From assembly GCA_964247055.1 (NCBI GenBank), contig OZ176058.1, positions 1,240,001 through 1,304,000 on the forward strand: 64,000 nt of DNA, in the 5' to 3' direction. Source of the DNA: Paragordius varius. Its lineage: Eukaryota > Animalia > Nematomorpha. The notes beneath the pieces were generated by a model. The model was not told the DNA's origin, searched no databases, and saw nothing but the letters and a program-made list of their open reading frames with translations. Of this stretch, positions 1 through 64,000 are shown one piece after another. Each line of letters starts with the position of its first letter. Position 1 is the stretch's first letter. The translations under genes were made by a program, and so were the position numbers.

Positions 1-74
1 TGTTTTACTGTCATATTATATTCATGTTAACAAAGAATTATATAAAAATAAATAAAATTTTAAAAGTAAATTAA

Positions 75-598
75 CTCTCGAATAAAATACATTCATTTCA
101 GTCCTTCGATTCAAATTTGGGTCGTTGAAACCCCATGGTTAGTTTAAGATTGAAAATATGGCAAAAATATGGAATAAATTAAAACCATGGCAAAAGTTTG
201 CACTTTAACATTTATAACCCGAAATATAATAAAATTTCAAAAACACATGATATTACTTATTCAGAGGTAAAACTTAAAGGTAAAAATTTAGCCAACATAG
301 TTAAATATAGAAATTATGTGTTTATATTAATGTTAAATGGGAATTAAATAAAAAGTGACCTAATTTTTGCCTTACAATCAAATAAACACGATATTTTGCA
401 CAAATGCTGTAAAATAAAAATGCCGTCGAAGCAGTTTGGTATGGAATTTTTTTTAAAACTAAATTTTATTTAGTTATTTTGGCTTTTAATTATAATTTTT
501 ATTAGGATAAGAGCATAAATTTAAATTAAAACGGTTTTATAGTAGTTTTTTTACTATCAACTTAGCGGTATTTAGATACCCCAATTTAAATCGAAGTG
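75..598. mobile_element. piggyBac-like non-autonomous element (family E), ~500-545 bp
   Basis: Ends ...AAGTG followed by TTAA (599-602). Homologous copies at 11231-11733 and 26653-27196 begin TTAA|CACTT. Partial copies near 10115-10190 and 38400-38455. A TTAA target is characteristic of piggyBac. Confidence 0.55.
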
Positions 599-743
599 TT
601 AACCGGTGACAGCGAGTAATGTTTTTTCCGAAAATGATTATTTCTATTTTGTCTTCATATAAGTTTAATTTTATTATAAGGCTCCAGAAATGTTATAAAT
701 AACTATATATACAGCTTTGGAAAATTATTACAAAAACGCTTAC

Positions 744-2291
744 CATAGACATACCCACCTAAAATAAAATAAATTATATTAAATTATATTTTTGCACTGG
801 AATAATGATTAGACTTTAGCTGTTTTAGATTAAATTAAATAAAATTAAAACATTAACGATTTTGTTCTCGTATTTATATAAAGTGATTTAGTTTCTTTGC
901 TAATCAGAAAGAGTTTTAAGGGTTATTTATAACATATGTAAAAAAGTTGACCATATTATTTTAGATTAAAATAATGTTTAAGATATACCAGGCTGTCCGG
1001 GCCGTCCAGGTTGCCCTCCTATTCTTCGCCCACCACCTAATAATATATATACTATAATCTATTCTACAAATTACAGTAAATATTGAAATTATACGGACAA
1101 AACGTAAAAATATAAAGACAAATGTTATTTTCTAAAAGACATTCATACTTTCAAAGCCTTAATTTTTCTCATATAAGCTATTAAGTTACAATTGTAAAAT
1201 ATAGAATGACTGTGTATTATTATATATATCTCTATTTCACACTTGGCCATTACAATGAGCTTTGTTGATATAATCTACATTTAAAAAGTATGGTTGTCTT
1301 TTAGAATAAAATATTTGTCTTTATTTTTTGTTATATTCGTATAATTTCAGATTGTGCTGTATTAAAAAAAGACTTTCACCTGCCAAATTTAAGTTTCTGA
1401 AATATAATTAATGTTTTGATTTTAACTAAAGATATTTATATGAAAAAAATGAGGTTTTTTACCTTCACCACAATATTAATTGTGCACAAATTTTGCGATT
1501 TTTCATACGAAGCAGCCATAAAAAAGAAAATATCTTTCTTAAATGACTCGTAAAGCTCAAGACTAAAAGCCCCAGGAGAATTATTATTTTATAATTTGTG
1601 CACTGTTTTTTGATATCCTTTTATCCATTATATAATTGAGCCTACAGTATCCAAGTTTAGACTGGCCAATTAACTTTATTGTTGTTCAAATGGTATAATA
1701 CAGTAGCGTATATATAAAACTAATTTTGTCCATAAAACTAAATAATCAATCAACCTTATTAACGCTGTAAGATAGGAAAAAATGATTAATTTCAACTATT
1801 TGCTGATGTTTTTACCCATACACTACTGTATTGCGCCAATTAACCAACAATAATATTAGGCCGTGTTTACTATTTATCATTTATTTTGTAAATTGTATTA
1901 ATTATTAGGTTTAGTGTTAGTAAAAATAATTTTAATTCATTTTGAATGAAAAAAAGTGTAAAATATTTGCAAAATATAAATTCTACCAGGCTGTCCAGGC
2001 CTACCTGGTTGCCCTCCTCTACCTAGAAAAAAATATATTTATCTAGCATATACCATTTACACTTCAAATTCACCCTTAAATTCAAATAACTCTTGAACGA
2101 TTCAAATTCACCCCCCGCTTATTTTATAATTTTTTCAGTATTATTTTAATTTTAAACAAAATTTCGCATTTTTTAAAACTATAAAAAATATAGGTAGGTA
2201 ATTTTTAATCTTAACAAACGTATAAATAAATTATTTTAGGGTGAATTCGAATTGTTTGAGGGTGAATTTGAAGTGTAAATGGTATTTAAAA

Positions 2292-2330
<39 letters not shown>

Positions 2331-5300
2331 ACTCTTACCATACGATGCGCCTAAAAATAGTATAAACAAATAGCATATAATTTTGTGTGGGTGACGACGA
2401 AGGGTTGTTAAATAACATTCGTATTAACGTCGTGTGAATAATAATGTAAGAAATAATTATTTATTAAAAACTCAAATTTTATCCCAATGGCATCATCAGG
2501 AGTTGTTAAAAAAAATAAACTTAAATAAATGTAAAACAGAATAAATTAAATGACATTTTTAACTAAAAAATAATTGTACTTTAAATCATACAAAATATAT
2601 GATAATTTTGTCTTACCTGGTTGCCCAGGCTGACCTGGTTGCCCGCCTCCGCCTCCCCCACCACCTAAAACAAATATAATTTAAGATAATATGAAATTTA
2701 TTCTTTTTTGTTTAACCAAATTAATTTATGTAAAAGAGGCCATATAAAAACATATTTAGATATATATATATATTCGAATTGTAATTTTTTATATGAGAGT
2801 TTAGTTACAGCAAAAATTTAAAATTATACGGACAACGTAAAAATATAAAGACAAATATTTTATTCCATACAACCATAGTTTTTAAAACTTGATTCCATTA
2901 GCACACATTGTTTTAAATGGCAAAGTGTGGAATAATATATTACTAACACAATCAATTCTTTATATTATAATTGTAACTAGATAATTTTATGAGAAAAATT
3001 AAGGTTTTTAAAAGTATGGTTGTCTTTTAAACAAAAATATTTTTGTAATTTTACGTTTTCGTATATCAGTTTTTACTGTATATGCATACATATATATTCG
3101 AATTGTAATTTTCTTTTATATAAATTTAATTGAGAGTTTAATTATCTAAGAAGAGCTTTTTGAGTTTTTATAATGATTGTTTGTTAAAATATTCCAAATT
3201 AACGTGTCTCTTACGACAAAAACTCACGGAATTAAAATATTTTATTTTTTCATAAAATTTAATCATTACACACATTATATAAATAAAAAATATTATATTT
3301 TTGGTGCTACATATTACAGTATAAATAAATATACATTGCTAGAAAGTTATTTATTATTGCGAAGTAGTATATACCACAAAGGGAAACATTATTGATTTAT
3401 AGCTATTTTTTCACTTTTTACTTTTATTAACCAATAATAATTCTCTATGTGGGAATAATTAATAACTTTATAGCAATGTATACTTAATCATATCTAATCT
3501 TAAAGCAAGTTAATAAACTTTATAAGTAGATTTTTTTATAATTTTTTTTCAAAAACAAAAAAATTAAAATTTAAAGTAAAAATTAGCTTATTAATGTTAA
3601 CTGACTCTCCCCATGTTTGAAAAGAAAATTATATTTACCCCCACCTCCGCCATAACCACCGCGTCCCCCATGGCCTCCGTCTAAATATTATACAGTAAAA
3701 ATTGAAATTATACGGACAAAATGTAAATAATAAAGACAAAATTTTTTTTCAAAAGATAATCCCATACTTTTTAAACCTTAATTTATCCCATAAAAATGAT
3801 TATATTACAATCGTAAAATACACAATTGATTGTGTTACCAATTTACATTTCTATATTATACTTTGTAGTATAAAGCAATCAGTTGTAATTAATATCAATC
3901 AAAATTAAAAAAGTATGGTTGTCTTTTTGAAAAAAATATTTGTCTTTATATTTTCACCTTTTGTCCGTCTATCCATTTTTACTGTATATATTTCATTAAA
4001 TTATTTTAGAATAACATTTTTTGTGTTCTACTTATATTAGCCTTCAGAAAAATTACAATCCATAATTTGACACACTCAAACACCATACTAGGGTATCCAT
4101 AATTTTTTACACTGGTAGTAAAAATAATATAATTTTGAAAGGAAATCATCAATTACGCTTTTTAATATTGTCAATCGGCTTGTAGACATTTTACTCAACT
4201 CACCAATAGTTTATATCATTCACAGTTCAAAATCACCCTTGAACAATTTAAATTCACCCTTGAAAAATTCAAATTCTCCGTATAATAAATTGTGTATTTT
4301 TTTAGATTAGAAAAAGTTATATTTTTATGCATTTTTAAAAAAATGAAGTTTTATTTAAAATTAAAATAATACTAAAAAAATATAAACTATGCCATAAAGA
4401 TAAATTTCATATTATTAATGTGTTATATTAGTTCTAAAATGTATAATATATTTTTAGGGTGAATATGAATTGTTAAAGTGTGAATTAGAATTGTTTCGAG
4501 GGTGAATTTTAATTGTTAAAGGGTGATTTGAACTGCAAATTGTAAAGTGCCAAAAAATTGATTGTTGACAGAAAATCGTTCGTCGATCTCATTCCCATTG
4601 ATACAAAGATTCAGTTAGAGGATGTGGAAAAAATTCTTTTAAAAGCGATTATTTTAAGGTTTATTCACAGTTTTGTGTGTGAGACGAAGCATTGTTATCT
4701 AACAAAATCATTCTGCCATGTTTTCTGGCTCATTACGTTTGTTTTGCAGTTATTAAACCGCAGAATTGGGACAATATTTAGACATGTCGTAAACCCTTCG
4801 ATGTTTACTCGTTTATGAAAGCTATGCTTTTCAAAAAAAATTATCTATAATAATTTTCCATTTATTTTTCGCAAAATTGCGGCTTGTGTATTTCATAAAA
4901 CAAATTATGCCAAAAATTTACCATTTTTAACTTGGCTAAATAAATATTGACATATTTTTTCAGATTGATACGCCCCTTACAGACGAGAAAACAGCGTAAA
5001 AAATACATTTTCTAATTATAAAGTAGTTCGATTTTGGCCCAATATTATATATATGAGTTAAATTAACTTATTTAGCAGTAAAAAAAAGATATTTTATACT
5101 TTATTTCGACATTGTATATACTGTACTCTTTAATTATATTTTTAGATAACAATCAGATTTAATATGGTTTCAATTCTGATGCCAAAAAATATTTAAATCA
5201 ATATAATCTTGGTGTTGGTTATAGTTTTGGCTTCGATTTCAAATTTTACGGGACCGAGTCCATTGTTTTTACAGTTAAATTTGAAATTATACGGACAAAA

Positions 5301-5726
5301 GGAAAATTATAAAGACAAATATTTTTTTAAAGACTACCATGCTTTTAAATATTGAATTATTTTAATTAATCTGATTGTTTTGAACTGCAAATTATATAAT
5401 GGATTATGTTACTAATAAACATCTATCTCATACTTTATAATTTAAAACAATAAGTTATATTTAGAAAAATTAAGTTTCAAAAAGTATGGTTGTATTTAAA
5501 TAAAAATATTTGTCTTTATATTTTCACGTTTTTCAGTTTAATTTGAATTTTTTACTGTATCTTAAGAAAAAATAAAAAATTTGTTGATAAAATCAATAAT
5601 ATAAAAAAATGTTTAATACATACAGCTATTCACTACTGGGAACATTAGAAGTGCAATCATCAAACTAATTAAGCAAGTCATTGTCACAAATCGTAAATTA
5701 ATAGTTCCACCATGTGATTGCTCCAT
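744..5726 (-). CDS. Secreted Gly-rich / GQP-repeat protein encoded by a micro-exon gene (3' end not found in window)
   Basis: Minus-strand exons, each with canonical AG/GT flanks: 5624-5726 (MEQSHGGTINLRFVTMTCLISLMIALLMFPVVNS, signal-peptide-like, donor GTATGT), 3639-3680 (42 nt), 2617-2664 (48 nt, donor GTAAGA), 2339-2350 (12 nt, GTAAGA), 1987-2022 (36 nt), 989-1036 (48 nt), 744-758 (15 nt, GTAAGC). All introns are phase 1 and the join is stop-free: ...VNS-YGGHGGRGGYGGGG-GGGGGGGGQPGQPGQP-GASY-GRGGQPGRPGQP-GGGRRIGGQPGRPGQP-GGYVY-G... Confidence 0.8.
2053..2282. mobile_element. TA-flanked MITE family B (TIR CCATTTACACTTCAAATTCACCCT)
   Basis: Perfect 24-bp inverted ends with TA flanks, and ~20-bp subterminal direct repeats (AATTCAAATTCACCCTTGAAC-like). 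Other copies at about 4216-4545, 18690-18950, 31751-32022, 35756-36035, 36280-36575, 39337-39645, 43390-43625 and 57814-58095. Confidence 0.8.
3693..3984. mobile_element. Tc1/mariner-type MITE family A (TIR CAGTAAAAATTGAAATTATACGGAC), the dominant repeat in the window
   Basis: TA|CAGTAAAA...TTTTACTG|TA with ~90-bp imperfect TIRs. Copies include 1074-1359, ~2806-3078, ~5270-5558, 7424-7702, ~21010-21265, 23631-23889, ~34855-35110, 35236-35523, ~42449-42715, 43066-43362, ~44000-44287, 44805-45094, ~48195-48430, 49925-50189, ~50396-50683, ~51680-52240, ~53275-53548 and 55610-55904, plus many degenerate copies. Confidence 0.85.
4560..4970 (-). pseudogene. mariner (DD34D) transposase relic
   Basis: Reverse strand reads HGRMILLDNNASSHT (compare mariner HGKVILLHDNAPSHT) and FVSMG, with stops and frameshifts. 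Confidence 0.5.
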
Positions 5727-5882
5727 ATTATTATTGTGTAGTGAATTGAATTTTCGATGATATAAAAATTAAAAATAAAATGATGTGAATAATAGATAGT
5801 GTTTTGGTATTTATATCTTTTTTTATATAAAAATAACGAGGTATGTATCCCCTGTATTTGTTTTTACCAATCAAGTAGTACA

Positions 5883-6845
5883 GTGTGTTCAGTTTTTAAG
5901 GGTTAATTTAGTTTTAGCGTACATTTTAATGAAATTAAAATGTTTGTTTTGGCTGCTTTTCATTTATCAATTTAAATTTCACTCGTTCAGTGTGTGTTTG
6001 TTTTACATCACACCGTTTAATTTTTATTTTAGGGTACAGTTAATAAAAATACTGGTTTCAGCCAGCCGTTAATAAATCTCTAAGGGTAAAACGTAAAAAA
6101 TGCTCTGCTTTTAATTTTGTCAACCTAAATATAGCAACCAAAAATATTATTCATTATATGGGTCTTTAAATGGTAAATTGAAAAAACGAGTGTGTTAAAT
6201 TTGTTTATCAAGGGTTAATTTCGATTTTAGGGTGCATTTTAATGAAATTATTATGTTTGATTTGACTGCTTCTCATTTATCAATTTAAATTTCACTTGTT
6301 CAGTGTGTGTTTGTTTTACATCACACCGTTTAATTTTTAGGGTACAGTTAATTAAAATACTGGTTCTAGCCAGCCGTTAATATATCTCTAAGGGTAAAAC
6401 GTAAAAAATGCTCTGCTTTTAATTTTGTCAACCTAAATATAGCAACCGTAAATACTATTAATTATATGGGCTTTTAAATGGTAATTAGAGAAAACGAGTG
6501 TGTTCAGTTTTGGTTTATCAAGGGTTATTCGATTTTAGGGTACATTTTAATGAAATTATCATGTTAGTTTTGACTGCTTCTCATTTATCAATTTAAATTT
6601 CATTCGTTTAGTGTGTGTTTGTTTTACATCACCGTTTAATTTTTATTTTAGGGGGTACAGTTAATTAAAATACTGGTTTTAACCAACCGTCAAATCTAGA
6701 ATTTGTTTGGTTATTTTCACCGTTAATATATCTTTAATAAGGATAAATGAAAAAAATGTTCTGCCTTTGATTTTGTCAACCTAAATATAGCAATAAAAAA
6801 TACTATTAATTATGTGGGTCTTTAAATGGTAAATAGGGAAAACGA
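5883..6845. repeat. Tandem repeat, three copies of ~308 bp
   Basis: Anchors such as AACGAGTGTG, TCAATTTAAATTTCA..CAGTGTGTGTTTG and TTTTGTCAACCTAAATATAGCAA recur about every 300-350 bp. Confidence 0.85.
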
Positions 6846-21404: not shown

Positions 21405-23254
21405 GATGATTATAATTTGTTTTTAATTGTTTTGATGTTTGATATGTCCACTTTCAACATGCGCATTTTTAAGCCTTAAAATAATAATAGCCTATTTATT
21501 GTAAGAATTTTTAATTTATAATTAAAAGATATTGCAAAATATTATTCATGATGCACAACATGCGCGTATTGTAATTTTTATCTTTTGTAAAATATTAATC
21601 ATAAAATTTTATTAACTCAAAGTTTAAACAAACATAACCAAAATATAATTTAAAAGATAAAAATATTTATTGATAATTATAATATTTAAATAAATTTATA
21701 ATTGTTTTCATTTTCTCGGGGTTTTCTTTGTATACATTCCAACAAAATATGTGAAGATAAATTATAATAATTTTTTAGATTTTTTTCCCTTCTCTCTTCG
21801 CAAAGTCTTGCAATTTTGTTATGCTGCTCTAGAGGGGTACTACACCGGGGTTTTTTATCATATTGATGTTTAATCTCATGAAAAAAACATTCAATGGGAT
21901 TCAGTTGTGGCGAATAAGGAGGTAAATAAACAATTTTTTTCCTTAGCTCACCTACCACCGCGTCTTTGTGAATAGGTGCATTATCGCAAACTATTATTAA
22001 ACTTTCAGGGATTCTTGTTAAACATTCCGTCAAAAAAATTCGAAAATCATCGCCTCTAAAGGCGCCTTCTTTTGTTCTGTAATTAATAACTCCCTGACAA
22101 CCAATCATACATATCAATGAAACATTTTTTCCTAAAATAAATTTAAAGTTTACCTTTGTTAAATCCCTCTACAATAGGAGATTTGCCCTTTGGAGCTCTA
22201 CCCCATATATTTGTAAGTTTCAAACTGAAGCCTGACTCATCAATAAAAAAAACTTTTTCTTGTGGAATTGGAATATCTTTCACCAATCTGGCATAATTAT
22301 AACGCTTTTCTATATTCTCTGGGGTCTTTCGTTCCCGAGGTTGTAAATTACACCTCTTTCAAGTTATTTGTAAATAGTTGTTCTGCATACTTTAATATGG
22401 TCTGGTATTTGTTCCATTAATTCATAGATTGTTATTTCACAATCACTGTTTATTAATGTTTTGACATCATCTATTATTTCTGGATTTCTGAATTTGTTAC
22501 GCCGACCAGATTTATTTCTATCAGTAGAATTTCCAAGAATTATTTTTCTTCCTAATATATTTATAGACGTTAAGGACATATCAAAATAATCCAAAAAATA
22601 ATTTGAGGGTTTTTCCAAATTTTTGGGATCAAAAAATAATTTTTTAGCTCTATCTATTTTTTCCTTATTCCAAAAATTATGTTTTAAAATTTAAAAAATA
22701 TTAATACTTTTATGTTTTATTTTTTCACGAGATAATTTATTTTCATTCAATGGAACATCCAAATCAGATACTACTAATTTTTCAAATACTTGAAGACTCT
22801 TCACTTGTATCCGATTCAAAAGTATAAACTGAGGGAGCTATGATTTCCTTTAATATTGGATTTCGTTCTGAATTTTTATTTTTTAATATAAACCTTCAAG
22901 TACACTAGCTGCCGAGCAAAGAAGAAATAATGGGTTATCGTTGATATTTATAATTTAACTGGATTTATAATTTATTTCTTTATATATATATAGAGATTAA
23001 ATGGACGACATCTGCTTGGGTTTAGTTTATATTTTAAGTGCATGTTAAAAACCCCTAGAAAATGAAAAGAAATATCAAACTTGGTTATCATAAATTACAT
23101 GCGCATGTTGTAGATAAAATGTTCAAGAATAATATTTTGCAACATCTTTTAATTATAAATTAATAATTCTCACAATAAATAGGCTATTATTATTTTAAGG
23201 CTTAAAAATGCGCATGTTGAAAGTTAAAACAATTAAAAACAAATTATAATCATT
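21405..23254 (-). mobile_element. IS630/Tc1-family DNA transposon with ~180-bp TIRs
   Basis: About 21405-21590 is the reverse complement of about 23090-23254; TA at 21403-21404 and 23255-23256; encloses a DDE transposase. Confidence 0.85.
21686..22690 (-). pseudogene. IS630/Tc1 (DDE_3-type) transposase, disrupted
   Basis: Motifs VFFIDESGF, IVCDNAPIH and YLPPYSPQLNPIE. Stop and frame break near 22345-22366 (TTIYK*). A 22-nt GT-AG insertion lies at 22132-22153. Confidence 0.85.
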
Positions 23255-30105: not shown

Positions 30106-32676
30106 CATAATAAACACGATTTTTGTTTTTTAAAGGCACCTGCCTCTTGCTTGATAGGAACTACTATGACTTCCAAATGCCAAGGTAGGCTAAGAAAATA
30201 ATAACCATGACACGTTTTATATTTAATATAAAGATGGCGTTTTAATCATCCTTATAATAATTAGTAATTAATTTTTATATTTTAATTACCCATTCATTAC
30301 CTATAAAGGTATTTCTTTAAATGCCAGAACGATTTAAAACTTGAATTTTCAATCAAAGTATTTAAGGTATTATGCCGAAAAAAATAAAATATCCCTTCTA
30401 TCCATCCTCGTCGCCAAATAAGATATAGAACGGTATAATGTTATTAAACGCATTATACAAATTTTTTTTTGCAATAAATCTAAAATTGTCATTTCAAACT
30501 TTTTTGCCACCATTATTTTCTTATAAATTTTTATTAAATTGCCAATGCAACAGGTATATAAAAGTATATAATTATAAGAAAATGTACACATTAACAAGTT
30601 TTCAATTTTAATAGCAAAAACTTGATATATTTTGATTTTAATATCAGCTGTTGGTTTTAATCATGTTTTGAAGGTGTCTCAATTTTAAACTCTAGAAGAC
30701 ACAAATAATTATAAGCTTTTTTTATTTGATAAACAATGTTTTATAAAATTTAACTATAATAACTTTCAAAACTGTTGTTTATTAACAAAATTTAGCTTTA
30801 GTATATAAAACTGCCTTAAAAGGTAAACTAGGACAAAAACGTCAAAAGGTCACAAAGTTTTAAAATATTTAAATATATAATACATAAAGCTATGATGCTA
30901 AAGATTAATATTATGCGGGCAAAAATAATTAAAAAACAAATATTATTTTAGTAATTATTTAAAAATGTTATTTTTATTATATATTTATTTTAATCAGTTT
31001 AAATTATTTAAAAAACAGGCTTAATTTATTTTTTTTCTATCAAAAGTCTAAATAAGTTAATTTATATTAAAATTAAAAAAAAATAAAAAAATCTTTTTAT
31101 TAGAAACATATCCTATATCTTTTAATTTTTTGCCATCTGTATTAATTGAATTTCTAAAATAAAAAGATATGTAATTACTTTTTACTGTTGTGCTGCCTTA
31201 TTTTGTTGTTATTTACTTACGTTTTTATAAGGCAAAAAAAATAAAAAATAAAAATAAAACGTAATACAGGTAAAAAAAACAGGTAAATAAAAAATCGTAA
31301 AATATACTTTCTTCTCTTGTACTTTTTTTTCTTTTTATACATTTTTTATGTAAGAATAACTTTTATATTTAAAATAAATCTTTATAATACATTTATATTA
31401 TATATATTGTTTTCAAAAATTTGCTCAAACAATTGAATTCAAAGAATGGGAATATACGTTAGAATTCAAATTTCATTTGAAAAGTAATGTATTTCGCTTT
31501 CACTGATGAAATAAATTTGATATATTTAAAAAAATATATTCCTTCTGTAATATCAGATATTCTGAAATATATTATGAATACCAAAAATCCCGAAATTTAA
31601 TTAAATACATACAGGTATAATACTACATTTTATAATTCTTTAATTATTTTTTAAAAAAAGAATTATAAACCATCGTATACAAATTCGACCTGTGTCTTAA
31701 ATTTTATATTTGTAGATTTTTTGTTTCCAACATTTAAAAACTTGAGATTACCATTTACACCTCAAATTCACCCTTGAACAATTCAAAATCACCCTTGAAC
31801 GTTTAAATTCACCCTAAAAAGTGTTTTTTAAGATTAAAAATTACCCGTATTCTTACATATATAAAATGAAATTTTAAAATTAAAATTATACTGAAAAATC
31901 AATAAACTCTGCCATAAGGATATATTTTTCATATTAATAATGAGTTATAATAGTTCAAAAAAATATAATTTATTTTCAGGGTGAATTTGAATCATCCAAG
32001 GGGGACTTTGAAATGTAAATGGTATATGATCCCATAATGTTAAGATCATATTTTTTTTCATTAACAAATGCATCAATTCACCTTTATATATATGAATAAA
32101 GTAGTTAAATATTTTTATCATGTCATAAACACTTTAAATAAGCTTAATTCTACAAATTTTTTCAATATTTCAAAAATTATGTATCTTTTGTAACAATGTG
32201 GTTACTTTTCATGGCTTAAGGCTATTAGATTACAAATGCATCTCTTAAATAATATCAATATGAGCTTTTTTCGTCTAAAAATTAGTTTGTACAACGGTGA
32301 GTTTAGAGAAATAGATATAAAATTTGGCATGTATGAATATGCATCATAAAATTCACAAAGAGCAGAATATTTCCATAATATATTTATTTTGATTTTATGG
32401 AAAAAAAATGATTTCAATACCGATTTCAAAAAAATTAATCAGATTTTAATGGTTGTCTCCAATCTATTTTTAATAATTATCATATATTTTTAAAACCTTT
32501 CTATTTACTCAGTGTGTGCATTAAAATTAATATTTTTACTCCTTTTACCCAATTAATGATACTTTCACTAGTTTTCAATTTTCTTATTGAAATATTTAGA
32601 TTATCCGGACAAAAAAAGGCATTATAAAAGATAGATTCTAATAAACGCTAATTTGATAAAGCCCTTCTTGTATAAT

Positions 32677-57568
<24,892 letters not shown>

Positions 57569-60510: not shown

Positions 60511-60560
60511 TACCGAACTAAGCTAGTGCTAGTGGAGGTCTTACTGATACCCAATCGAAC

Positions 60561-63500
60561 ATGACAACGCCAATCAATCTCGCTAACCTATGCATCGAAA
60601 AATATAATGATAATATTAAGTTTGAGGAATACGTTGAGTATATGACAAATGTTATGGAGGCAAAAGATATCCCTGTAACAGAACAAGCCCTCAAAACAAC
60701 CTTGCTTGCGTATGGAGGTCTAATGGTGGTACGCAAAATCAACCAACGACTCTATCCGAAAAAGATAAAAGATGCAGAATGGACCGAGATAATGGCAACG
60801 GGTTTAAAGGTATTCAATCCCACAAAGTCGAAATTCCAAAGCAGATTTGAGTTTTTCCGACTTGTGCGGAACAACACCGAATCGTTTACCCAATTTCTAG
60901 AACGGGTAAAAATCGCAGCCGAAGAGGCAAAATTTAAGGATTCAATAGAGGAACGGATTCGAGATGCCTTCGTCATTGGGTTACGGCAACCACAATTGGA
61001 AATTGACATACATTCAAGGTATCCCGATGCCGAGATCAACGGACAACCCGTGCCTCTAGAAACGATAGTGGATCTCGCACTAGCACACGAGGCTGCCAGG
61101 GCTGGCCTTCATAACAATAATGATAATACCAATTATAATAATGGTAGTAATTTAAATCGATTACAACACACCAATAATAATAACAAGGCCATGCGTTCAC
61201 GACAGCCAACAGCAAAACCCCTAACACATTCGTGCAATCGTTGTGGTAATAGCCATGGACCAAACAAATGTCCTGCCTGGAACCGCAATTGCAATAAATG
61301 CGGAAAACCTCATCACTTCGCAAAAATGTGTAGATCAAAAAACACTGCCAAAAATTTGTTCAACCGCCAGATCCATAGAAAAGCAATGCCAACCTCACCA
61401 TGGACCGTAAAAATAATGATAAACAACACAGAACAAACGTTTATCTATGATACTGGAGCTGACATCAGTGTTATCAGCTTTGACACCTGGAAACAAGTTG
61501 GCAAGCCAAATATTAGACCCATACCGCCAGTAAAAGCCTACAATAATAGCATAGTACCTCTACTGGGCGTAACAACAGTCACAGTGCAAATCAATGGGCA
61601 AAACTTGGGGAACGCAGAATGTTGTGTATTGAAAGAAAAAATGTCAAAGGCACCGCTCATTTGTGGCTTGGATTGGATCACGAGATTTAACATCGACATT
61701 CCTAAAGTACGAATTAACTTTCTTAAACTTGATAAAATTATTGAAAATTTCCCTAATCTATTTAAAGAGGAATTAGGTTGTTACATTGAGCCAGTTACAA
61801 TTCATATAGCACCCAATGCCTCCCCCAAAGTTTGGCCTTGCCGCCGAGTACCGTTTCCCCTAAGAGCAAAAGTTGAAAATGAATTACTAAGATTACAAAA
61901 GTTAGACATTTTGGAGCCGATAGATCCCAACCTTACACCTCTGACATGGGCCACGCCCACCGTTAATGTGCTCAAAGCGAATGGAGAGGTAAGAATTTGC
62001 AGCGATTTTAGAGTTACCATCAACAAGTGGCTCACTGAGGACTCTCATATCATTCCAACGTTTGATGATTTAGTGAGTAAGATTGGCGAAGGCCAAGTTT
62101 TCACTAAGATTGACTTGAAAGATGCCTATCTACAAATGCCCATAACCAAAGAATCACAAGATCTCTTGACAATTGCGACTCACAAAGGATTTTTTCGCTA
62201 CAAAAGGATGCCTTTCGGACTGTCAACAGAACCAATAATTTTCCAACGAGTCATGGACCAGGTTATAAAAGATTGTCCCGGCACTTGTGCATATTTAGAT
62301 GATGTTTTAGTAACTGGCAAATCTGAAGAGGAACATTTAATAAATCTTAATAATGTTTTAAATCGGTTAGAATTAGCAGGTTTTAGATTAAGAAAAGATA
62401 AAATAAAAATTGGTGAACCTTCAGTAAGTTATCTGGGATTTGAAATAAGTAATAAAGGTATAAGTCCTTGCAAGAATAAAGTAAAAGCAATCAATGATTT
62501 TAAAAAACCTGTGGATAAAAAATCTTTAAGAAGTTTTCTAGGATTTTTGACGTTTCATGAAAGATTTATACCCAAGCTTCAATTGATTGTAAGTGACTTA
62601 CATAGTTTAACAAGTAAGAACGTTAGATGGAACTGGTCGGAAAAACATGAGAATTGTTGGAAAGCCGCTAAGGAATTATTAAGTGAACAAGTATTTTTAA
62701 CACCATACAATCCGGATAGAAAGTTAGTAATTGAAACCGATGCCTCAGATATAGGGTTTGGATGTATTCTAAGTCATGTTGTAAATGGTGAAAGGAAACC
62801 CATTGCCTATGGTTCAAGAAAATGTAGTACCGCAGAATCGAACTACTCCACGATAGAAAAGGAATTAAAGGCTATTGTTTTTGCATTAGAAAAGTTCCAC
62901 AACTTCATTTATGGTAGAAAGTTTGAAATTTTGACAGACCACTTACCACTTGTGAGGTTAATAAATAGGGATAGAAATTTGAAAGAAATACAAAATGCGA
63001 AAATTTTAAGATGGGTGAACCGTTTGAATGATTATGACTTTGAACTTAGTTATCAGGCGGGTCCCAAAAATAGAGCTGATTACTTATCAAGATGTCCCAG
63101 TGATGATAATGTCGACACAATCGATAGAGATTACATGGTAACTAGATATCTTAGGTTTCTTAATTGTCATAACGTTCAGTTAAGTCGCGATGAAATTCGG
63201 AGAGAAACGGTTAAAGATAAAATTTTGCAGAAAGTAATTAAGGCGATTCATAACCAAGATTGGAGTGATGTTGAGTTGGCTGGGTTTACGAATCGGAAGG
63301 GAGAGATTTCGTACCAATACGGATTGGTCAGTTTAAACGATCGAATTATCATTCCAGAAAGCTTACAGTCAAACGTGGTCAACTACTTACACAGCGGGCA
63401 CAATAACGTAGAAACAATGAAAGCAATGGCAAGGTTCACTTGTTTTTGGCCGAAATTAGAGAACGATTTGGTAAGAAGATACAGTGAGTGTAGTGCATGT

Positions 63501-64000
63501 CAGATAAACAAGCCAAGCCTAGTTGAAAATCCGACTTATCATTGGGATCCAAATGCTGCGATATGGGAACGGTTACACATCGATATAGCGGGACCAGTTG
63601 ACGGGTATTATTGGTTGTTACTGATTGATAGCTCATCCAAATGGGCGGAAGGGTTCATGTTAAAAAAGGTTAATTCGGTAAACATATTGCATAAACTCGA
63701 GGAAACCTTTGCCAGGTTTGGGTTTCCGAGGACGGTTATTAGTGATAATGCTTCTTATTTTAGTAATTCGTACTTCACATCCACTCTAACAAACTTGGGT
63801 ATTAAACACGTGAGGGTAACCCCCTATCATCCTAAAAGTAATGGGATGGTAGAAAGGTTAGTGGGGACCCTCAAGGGCAAGTATAGAAAAATCAAAAATG
63901 ATAATATTTCACCACAAGAAGCCTTCAATACCACTCTATGGTCATATCGTAATTCAATACATGCGACTACAAAAGAAACCCCGTTTCAACTACTCTTCAA
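60561..64000 (+). mobile_element. Ty3/Gypsy LTR retrotransposon, single gag-pol ORF (Mag-like), truncated by the window edge
   Basis: Read by hand as open from ATG 60561 to 64000 (1146 codons); absent from the ORF track because it has no stop. Two zinc knuckles CNRCGNSHGPNKC and CNKCGKPHHFAKMC; protease YDTGAD; RT IDLKDAYLQ, RMPFG and YLDD; RNase H ETDASD and TDH; integrase HSGH..C..C, HIDIAG, SDNAS and NGMVER, in PR-RT-RH-IN order. Confidence 0.95.

Follow-up and report, generated by a model that had tools for sequence, protein, structure and literature searches.

A 64,000-nucleotide stretch of the genome of the horsehair worm Paragordius varius (contig C9, positions 1240001-1304000; this whole stretch is referred to as the window) carries at its left end a minus-strand gene, gene C, whose open frames, splice borders and related copies mark it as very probably a real, intact protein-coding gene. 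Gene C spans C9:1245726-1230327 on the minus strand, leaves the window at its left edge, and consists of a putative signal-peptide exon, a series of micro-exons of 12 to 48 nt, and a stop-bearing terminal exon. Gain and loss of cassettes occurred between gene C and its two paralogs over evolutionary time. On balance, and taken as one whole statement, gene C seems to encode a secreted, disordered matrix-type protein (of cuticle, egg coat, or adhesive) that is built from frame-neutral micro-exons. The family is a further instance of a known gene design and not a new class. It illustrates from nature how a predicted secreted repeat protein can, through phase-1 symmetry, gain or lose 12-48-nt cassettes in frame, with three such events documented.

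Exon structure of gene C

The original prediction had proposed, in this part of the window, a hidden gene with a signal-peptide exon followed by six symmetric internal exons of 42, 48, 12, 36, 48, and 15 nt. Re-reading of the sequence recovered all seven exons on the minus strand at the positions given for them, with AG/GT borders and with every internal exon in phase 1-1. The location of exon 1 was likewise borne out, but its end required correction, the last base being 5624 and the donor GT lying at 5623-5622. The GC-rich specks reported there are indeed flanked by splice signals, with a T-rich tract and AG before and GTA or GTG after every internal exon, and the GC content of the exons is 47-76% against ~24% (22-27%) in their surroundings. 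In window coordinates, the features of this part are as follows.

5727..5916, minus strand: promoter and 5' untranslated region block, conserved among the three paralogs in a three-way alignment
5726-5624, minus strand: exon 1, 34 codons opening with ATG, plus 1 base; start context aataatATGG; donor T/GTATGT
3680-3639, minus strand: exon 2, 42 nt, phase 1-1; split codon T/AC (Tyr), then GGHGGRGGYGGGG
2664-2617, minus strand: exon 3, 48 nt, phase 1-1; poly-Gly, then QPGQPGQP
2350-2339, minus strand: exon 4, 12 nt, phase 1-1; (G)ASY; strong donor G/GTAAGA
2022-1987, minus strand: exon 5, 36 nt, phase 1-1; (G)RGGQPGRPGQP
1036-989, minus strand: exon 6, 48 nt, phase 1-1; (G)GGRRIGGQPGRPGQP; opens the repeated 48/15/36-nt module
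758-744, minus strand: exon 7, 15 nt, phase 1-1; (G)GYVY; donor G/GTAAGC

The length of every internal exon is divisible by three, and each of these exons stays open in the frame fixed by the phase-1 introns on both of its sides; an in-phase GT inside exon 5 gives a possible 18-nt version of that exon. An exon filter was defined by a pyrimidine-rich tract, AG, an open phase-1 frame, a length that is a multiple of 3, GT followed by A or G, and a GC content of at least 0.5. On both strands of the other ~58 kb of the window, this filter returned scattered, unaligned matches only, mostly in a tandem array and a retroelement. The matches in gene C are consecutive, lie on one strand, are all glycine-rich, and chain from the signal-peptide exon into a single open frame. 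Because the same filter yields only matches that do not line up elsewhere in the window, the exon chain of gene C is not a product of chance.

The remaining exons and the stop were expected to the left of the window, and the extension in that direction found them over ~10 kb further, in the form of eight micro-exons, one candidate cassette, and a terminal exon with the stop.

C9:1239987-1239952, 1238527-492, and 1235820-785, minus strand: 36-nt exons (GIHGQPGEPGQP)
C9:1239577-30 and 1236856-09, minus strand: 48-nt exons (GGGRRIGGQPGRPGQP)
C9:1236580-66, minus strand: 15-nt exon (GGNVY)
C9:1234955-1234914, minus strand: candidate 42-nt cassette (GGVVRVQPRQPGRS), diverged; good acceptor, GTAAAT donor, open phase-1 frame
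C9:1234073-44, minus strand: 30-nt exon
C9:1233334-23, minus strand: 12-nt exon (GGYG)
C9:1230427-1230327, minus strand: terminal exon, 101 nt; non-repetitive 32-residue tail, with the TAA overlapping AATAAA

Without the candidate, the gene C model comprises 16 exons and 666 coding nt in 15.4 kb (4.3%), which gives 221 codons with no internal stop. Its 14 internal micro-exons (12-48 nt, all phase 1-1) account for 462 of the 666 coding nt (69%), a pattern that recurs in both paralogs, and all 15 introns, of 228-2895 nt, cut a codon after its first base. The 42-nt segment, for which no counterpart was found in paralog A or B, may be either an additional cassette or one in decay; its inclusion brings the model to 17 exons, with 15 internal micro-exons instead of 14. 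As had been anticipated, a gene of this form, here intact, under selection, and present in three copies, is invisible to finders based on open reading frames, and probably to many gene predictors as well.

The introns of gene C are partly filled by short elements with inverted ends that resemble miniature inverted-repeat transposable elements (window positions 73-602, 1068-1364, 2032-2304, and 2805-3000). These elements make up much of the intron length and recur dozens of times, at 72-84% identity, across all large contigs. An origin of the introns by insertion of mobile elements was considered and rejected: the elements occupy parts of some introns only, which leaves the intron positions unexplained, and no genome-wide copies exist of the 230-nt intron that separates exon 6 from exon 7.

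Paralogs and turnover of cassettes

A genome search for paralogs with the same exon grammar, which the original prediction had proposed, retrieved two intact copies 60-95 kb away from gene C.

C9:1147072-1157848, plus strand: gene A, 18 exons, 231 amino acids, fully open, canonical splice sites
C9:1172923-1181038, plus strand: gene B, 10 exons, 154 amino acids, fully open, canonical splice sites

Exon 1 and the terminal exon each occur at exactly three places in the 110.6-Mb assembly, in which no family members beyond genes A, B, and C were found. A degenerate form of the exon-end pattern GQPGxPGQP gave 19 matches, all inside these three genes and all in the sense orientation, and its reversed control gave 0. 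Identity among the paralogs is 94% over positions -190 to -1, compared with 83.5% in the introns that flank the exons and 77% in the 3' flank. In gene C, the conserved block contains TATA-like boxes at ~5829-5821 and 5815-5809, 83-104 nt upstream of the ATG. The exon 1 copies are 81-100% identical, with a 3-nt in-frame indel between gene C and its paralogs.

The genes differ in the number and kind of their cassettes. The 48/15/36-nt module is present three times in gene C, four times in gene A, and once in gene B. Exons 2 and 3 are missing from paralog A, whereas paralog B keeps exon 2 with its AG/GT borders and has a 39-nt version of exon 3. Exon 4 reads PSY in paralog A and is deleted in paralog B (C9:1176070-1176110), beside an (AT)n run, and exon 5 is common to all three genes. 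The 48-nt type of exon 6 occurs in eight copies across the three genes, with AG/GT borders in all and mostly synonymous differences, and the 15-nt type of exon 7 occurs in seven copies. In module 2 of gene C (C9:1239300 region), the 15-nt exon was lost through a 13-nt deletion that took most of the exon together with the donor GT. Neither this deletion nor that of exon 4 in paralog B harms the reading frame, and the coding indels across the three genes are multiples of three or removals of whole cassettes. Since the paralogs differ by such clean, frame-neutral changes, phase-1 symmetry is in actual evolutionary use in this family. As modeled, internal exons would begin at position 2 of a glycine codon and end at position 1 (with Tyr, T/AC, in exon 2), so that any cassette, or any 48/15/36-nt module with its introns, could be duplicated, deleted, or skipped in frame.

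Selection on the exons

Selection was assessed on 32 exon copies from seven exon classes, with the introns represented by 100 nt on each side. The mean pairwise difference is 5.6% for the exons and 16.5% for the flanking introns, and the variable columns are distributed 6/4/15 over codon positions 1/2/3 (n = 25; binomial p = 0.006). The 36-nt exon shows five variable sites over its seven copies, all of them synonymous, and along the alignment of modules, conservation is highest on the exons. Whole modules (48-nt exon, intron, 15-nt exon, intron, and 36-nt exon) are 13-19% diverged in pairwise comparison, and their tree is star-like, with weak pairs across genes; recent copying alone is therefore insufficient to account for the identity of the exons. 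Recent gene conversion was rejected as its source on the same evidence, the introns of the modules being 13-19% diverged. Because exons differ less than introns, third positions are favored among the changes, and whole cassettes are gained or lost cleanly, the gene appears to be real and under selection. The central claim of the original prediction, that a real gene for a secreted protein lies hidden here, thus gains support from the comparative evidence of paralogs, selection, and open frames.

Predicted product of gene C

The mature product computed from the gene C model has ~187 residues, an isoelectric point of ~10.8, and no cysteine (paralog A, 1; paralog B, 0). It is a low-complexity protein with 41% Gly, 14% Pro, 9% Gln, 9% Arg, and 5% Tyr, in which Lys (2.7%) is found in the tail only. 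Short collagen-like GQPG(R/E)PGQPG stretches are interrupted by GGYVY, GIH, and GGGRRI. The leader encoded by exon 1, assessed by eye, has 34 residues, with a polar n-region ending at R12, a hydrophobic core of ~20 residues, and a c-region, VNS, that ends exactly at the exon border; the product is probably secreted. Within a matrix, its Tyr and Arg residues may serve cross-linking or cohesion, and its Gly/Pro stretches may provide flexibility.

It is rather unlikely that the same protein is instead a multi-peptide precursor, cleaved at regular dibasic sites into several cationic, Gly/Pro-rich antimicrobial or signaling peptides of ~28-33 residues. The sites would be one GGG-RR-I in each module and a G-KKRR ahead of the C-terminal tail, and the glycine before the pair could be an amidation signal. 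The spacing is consistent with such processing: the RR pairs of the mature gene C product occupy residues 50, 83, and 111, with KKRR at 156, a Gly before every site, and one site per module, and the change of RR to RK in paralog B still leaves a dibasic pair. The protein is also Cys-free and basic, as its isoelectric point indicates. Multi-copy peptide precursors vary in module number, and the paralogs differ in the same way. However, the dibasic sites are not strictly kept, because the tail site KKRR reads KKRQ in paralog A and KKQR in paralog B, and one copy in paralog A has PR in place of RR. Moreover, a literature search for the motifs gave no similar peptide, and dibasic pairs are common in structural Gly/Arg-rich proteins as well.

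Comparison with known gene designs

The original prediction had likened gene C to the micro-exon genes (MEGs) of schistosomes, in which ~80% of the coding sequence lies in symmetric 6-36-bp exons and the products are secreted (PMC5825161). Exons of these genes typically have 6-36 nt, and 3-81 nt overall (PMC5825161, PMC10526429), and a gene has 10-20 of them, with introns of 0.1-5 kb (PMC10526429). Gene C resembles the MEGs in its putative signal-peptide first exon, its short symmetric exons (12-48 nt), its long introns, and its clustered paralogs, and both are difficult for automatic annotation (PMC5825161, PMC10526429). It differs in that it belongs to a horsehair worm, a placement to which the mitochondrial palindromes also point, and not to a flatworm, and in that purifying selection acts on its predicted product, a repetitive Gly/Pro protein. 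The special property of the MEGs is alternative splicing, which in gene C would be a prediction from genomic sequence. Pfam gave no match for exon 1 or for the terminal exon, and no relation to a described MEG family was found in these searches or among the protein representatives searched with the terminal exon.

The architectural part of the MEG comparison stands: symmetric exons of 12-48 nt, behind a putative signal-peptide exon, hold 69% of the coding sequence. As an account of what the gene does, however, a structural matrix fits at least as well, because the phase-1:1 cassette design is standard in tropoelastin (PMC12554196). Under MEG-like variation, many skipping combinations in a secretory tissue of the parasite would, as in schistosomes, yield a population of secreted variants at the host interface. 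We consider this improbable, and its combinatorial part is pure inference by analogy. The putative signal-peptide exon, the symmetric coding exons, and introns of 0.2-2.9 kb agree with the MEG architecture (PMC5825161, PMC10526429), the internal in-phase GT sites of exons 2 and 5 permit in-frame shortening, individual cassettes are dispensable across paralogs, and the horsehair worm is a parasitoid. Against this stand a repetitive, low-complexity Gly/Pro protein, in which the skipping of one repeat cassette would alter length more than identity, and the lack of any run recorded as RNA among the sequencing runs that match the exon 1 region. The peptide is also conserved, with 0 non-synonymous changes over the 7 copies of the 36-nt exon, which is the opposite of the fast evolution reported for host-interface MEGs (PMC4350168). 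Finally, elastin shows the same design in a structural protein (PMC12554196).

There is similarly little probability that the three genes are part of a genome-wide MEG-like set in the horsehair worm, in which combinatorial skipping would diversify secreted or surface proteins exposed to the insect host. Were combinatorial skipping to occur, the micro-exon strategy of blood flukes and aphids would have evolved anew in a further parasite phylum, and these genes would be candidate components of the cuticle, the egg coat, or the host interface in a group with almost no molecular biology. A genome-wide set would represent a further independent origin in a parasite lineage, after flukes, tapeworms, and aphids. 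If splicing is constitutive, gene C would be an elastin-style structural gene.

Tropoelastin, which is encoded by a vertebrate gene next to LIMK1, is the nearest analogue of gene C as judged by predicted protein type; it is an analogue, and gene C is not a member of its family. In tropoelastin, all exons have phase 1:1 borders, ~6% of the gene is coding, and cassette splicing takes place (PMC12554196). Gene C shares the phase 1:1 borders throughout, which allow in-frame loss, gain, or duplication of cassettes, and a coding share of a few per cent (~6% in elastin and 4.3% in gene C). Tropoelastin is a secreted, Gly/Pro-rich, disordered matrix protein with replicated exon regions (PMC12554196), and the gene C product is of this type by prediction. 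There is, however, no homology, and the exons of gene C are far smaller. Gene C is also without the alternating hydrophobic and Lys-Ala cross-linking exons, the candidates for cross-linking being Tyr and Arg.

The bicycle genes of aphids have internal exons that almost all start at codon position 2 (PMC9168663). Together with the megacycle genes, they encode secreted proteins from many micro-exons, as gene C is predicted to, and share with it the intron phase, the paralog clusters, and the occurrence in an animal that lives at the expense of another (PMC9168663). Paired CYC (Cys-Tyr-Cys) motifs are a feature of bicycle proteins, whereas the mature gene C protein has no Cys, and there is no sequence similarity between them. 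Furthermore, the bicycle genes are backed by direct RNA and proteome data from the salivary gland, and gene C by its genomic sequence.

The resemblance to nematode-type cuticle collagens lies in the stretches GQPGRPGQPG and GQPGEPGQPG, which are Gly-X-Pro triplets, and in glycine codons that are split by phase-1 introns. In gene C, however, YVY, RRI, and register shifts interrupt the runs after every 4-5 triplets, and the protein is without Cys knots or NC domains, which together make a triple helix unlikely. The longest run with glycine at every third residue, poly-Gly included, is 8 triplets in gene C, 5 in gene A, and 10 in gene B. The Pfam collagen repeat covers ~20 triplets, and a true collagen was rejected because the Gly-X-Y runs are too short (5-10 triplets). 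As judged from sequence, membership by descent in the MEG, bicycle, or tropoelastin families is not supported, and the resemblance is one of design.

Evidence against a working matrix-protein gene

Several points weigh against reading gene C as a working gene for a secreted matrix protein. The ~20-residue core of the exon 1 leader is long, so that a signal anchor is possible. A structural matrix function, for which composition is the evidence, is the likeliest function but an evenly balanced call. The conservation statistics derive from 25 variable columns, and few independent events lie behind them because the three copies are related. A search of sequencing runs with the exon 1 region gave five matching runs of unrecorded kind, none recorded as RNA; they matched 27-60% of the sampled words, a share to be expected of exon-only RNA contigs and of slightly diverged DNA alike, and they were given no weight. 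The peptide of the terminal exon had 0 matches among 1.84 billion representative proteins, a set from which the records of this genome may be missing, and the proposed function is thus without support from an outside homolog.

The run search and the missing homolog also count toward the weakest alternative, that gene C is a set of decayed or never-expressed repeat remnants (such as a fragment derived from a collagen and multiplied by segmental duplication) with a frame left open by recency or chance, as do the abundant mobile-element copies in the introns, a weak GTTTAT donor at one 48-nt copy in paralog A, and the strongly diverged 42-nt candidate cassette in gene C; it is nevertheless highly improbable, with 44 exons (10-18 per locus at three loci) open and bordered by canonical splice sites despite 13-19% intron divergence, exons that evolve three times slower than introns with an excess of third-position changes, coding indels that are multiples of three or entire cassettes, and a promoter, start context, stop, and AATAAA that are all conserved.

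Other features of the window and of the mitochondrial contig

The remainder of the window contains four further features, given in window coordinates.

21689-22690, minus strand: open frames resembling a Tc1/IS630-type transposase (DDE region)
32635-40460, plus strand: a 516-codon, Asn/Ser-rich, low-complexity frame and ankyrin-repeat-like exons (e.g., GLTALHQ), read by eye
45300-48150: tandem array with a period of 1,062 bp, ~three units, and 35% GC, with repeated open frames on both strands
60522-63998, plus strand: a 1,159-codon, GC-rich open frame that runs past the window end, Ty3/gypsy-type retroelement pol

The frame and the exons at 32635-40460 suggest a gene of the myosin-phosphatase-targeting type. 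The tandem array matched no Rfam family at the gathering score. The pol frame contains aspartyl protease, reverse transcriptase, RNase H, and integrase domains.

On the mitochondrial contig (C44:5980-10320), zero-spacer palindromes with arms of 131 nt and 97 nt lie upstream of cox1, as does a series of palindromic 52-nt units repeated in tandem. In mitochondrial DNA, long perfect inverted repeats have been described as peculiar to Nematomorpha (PMC10380579).

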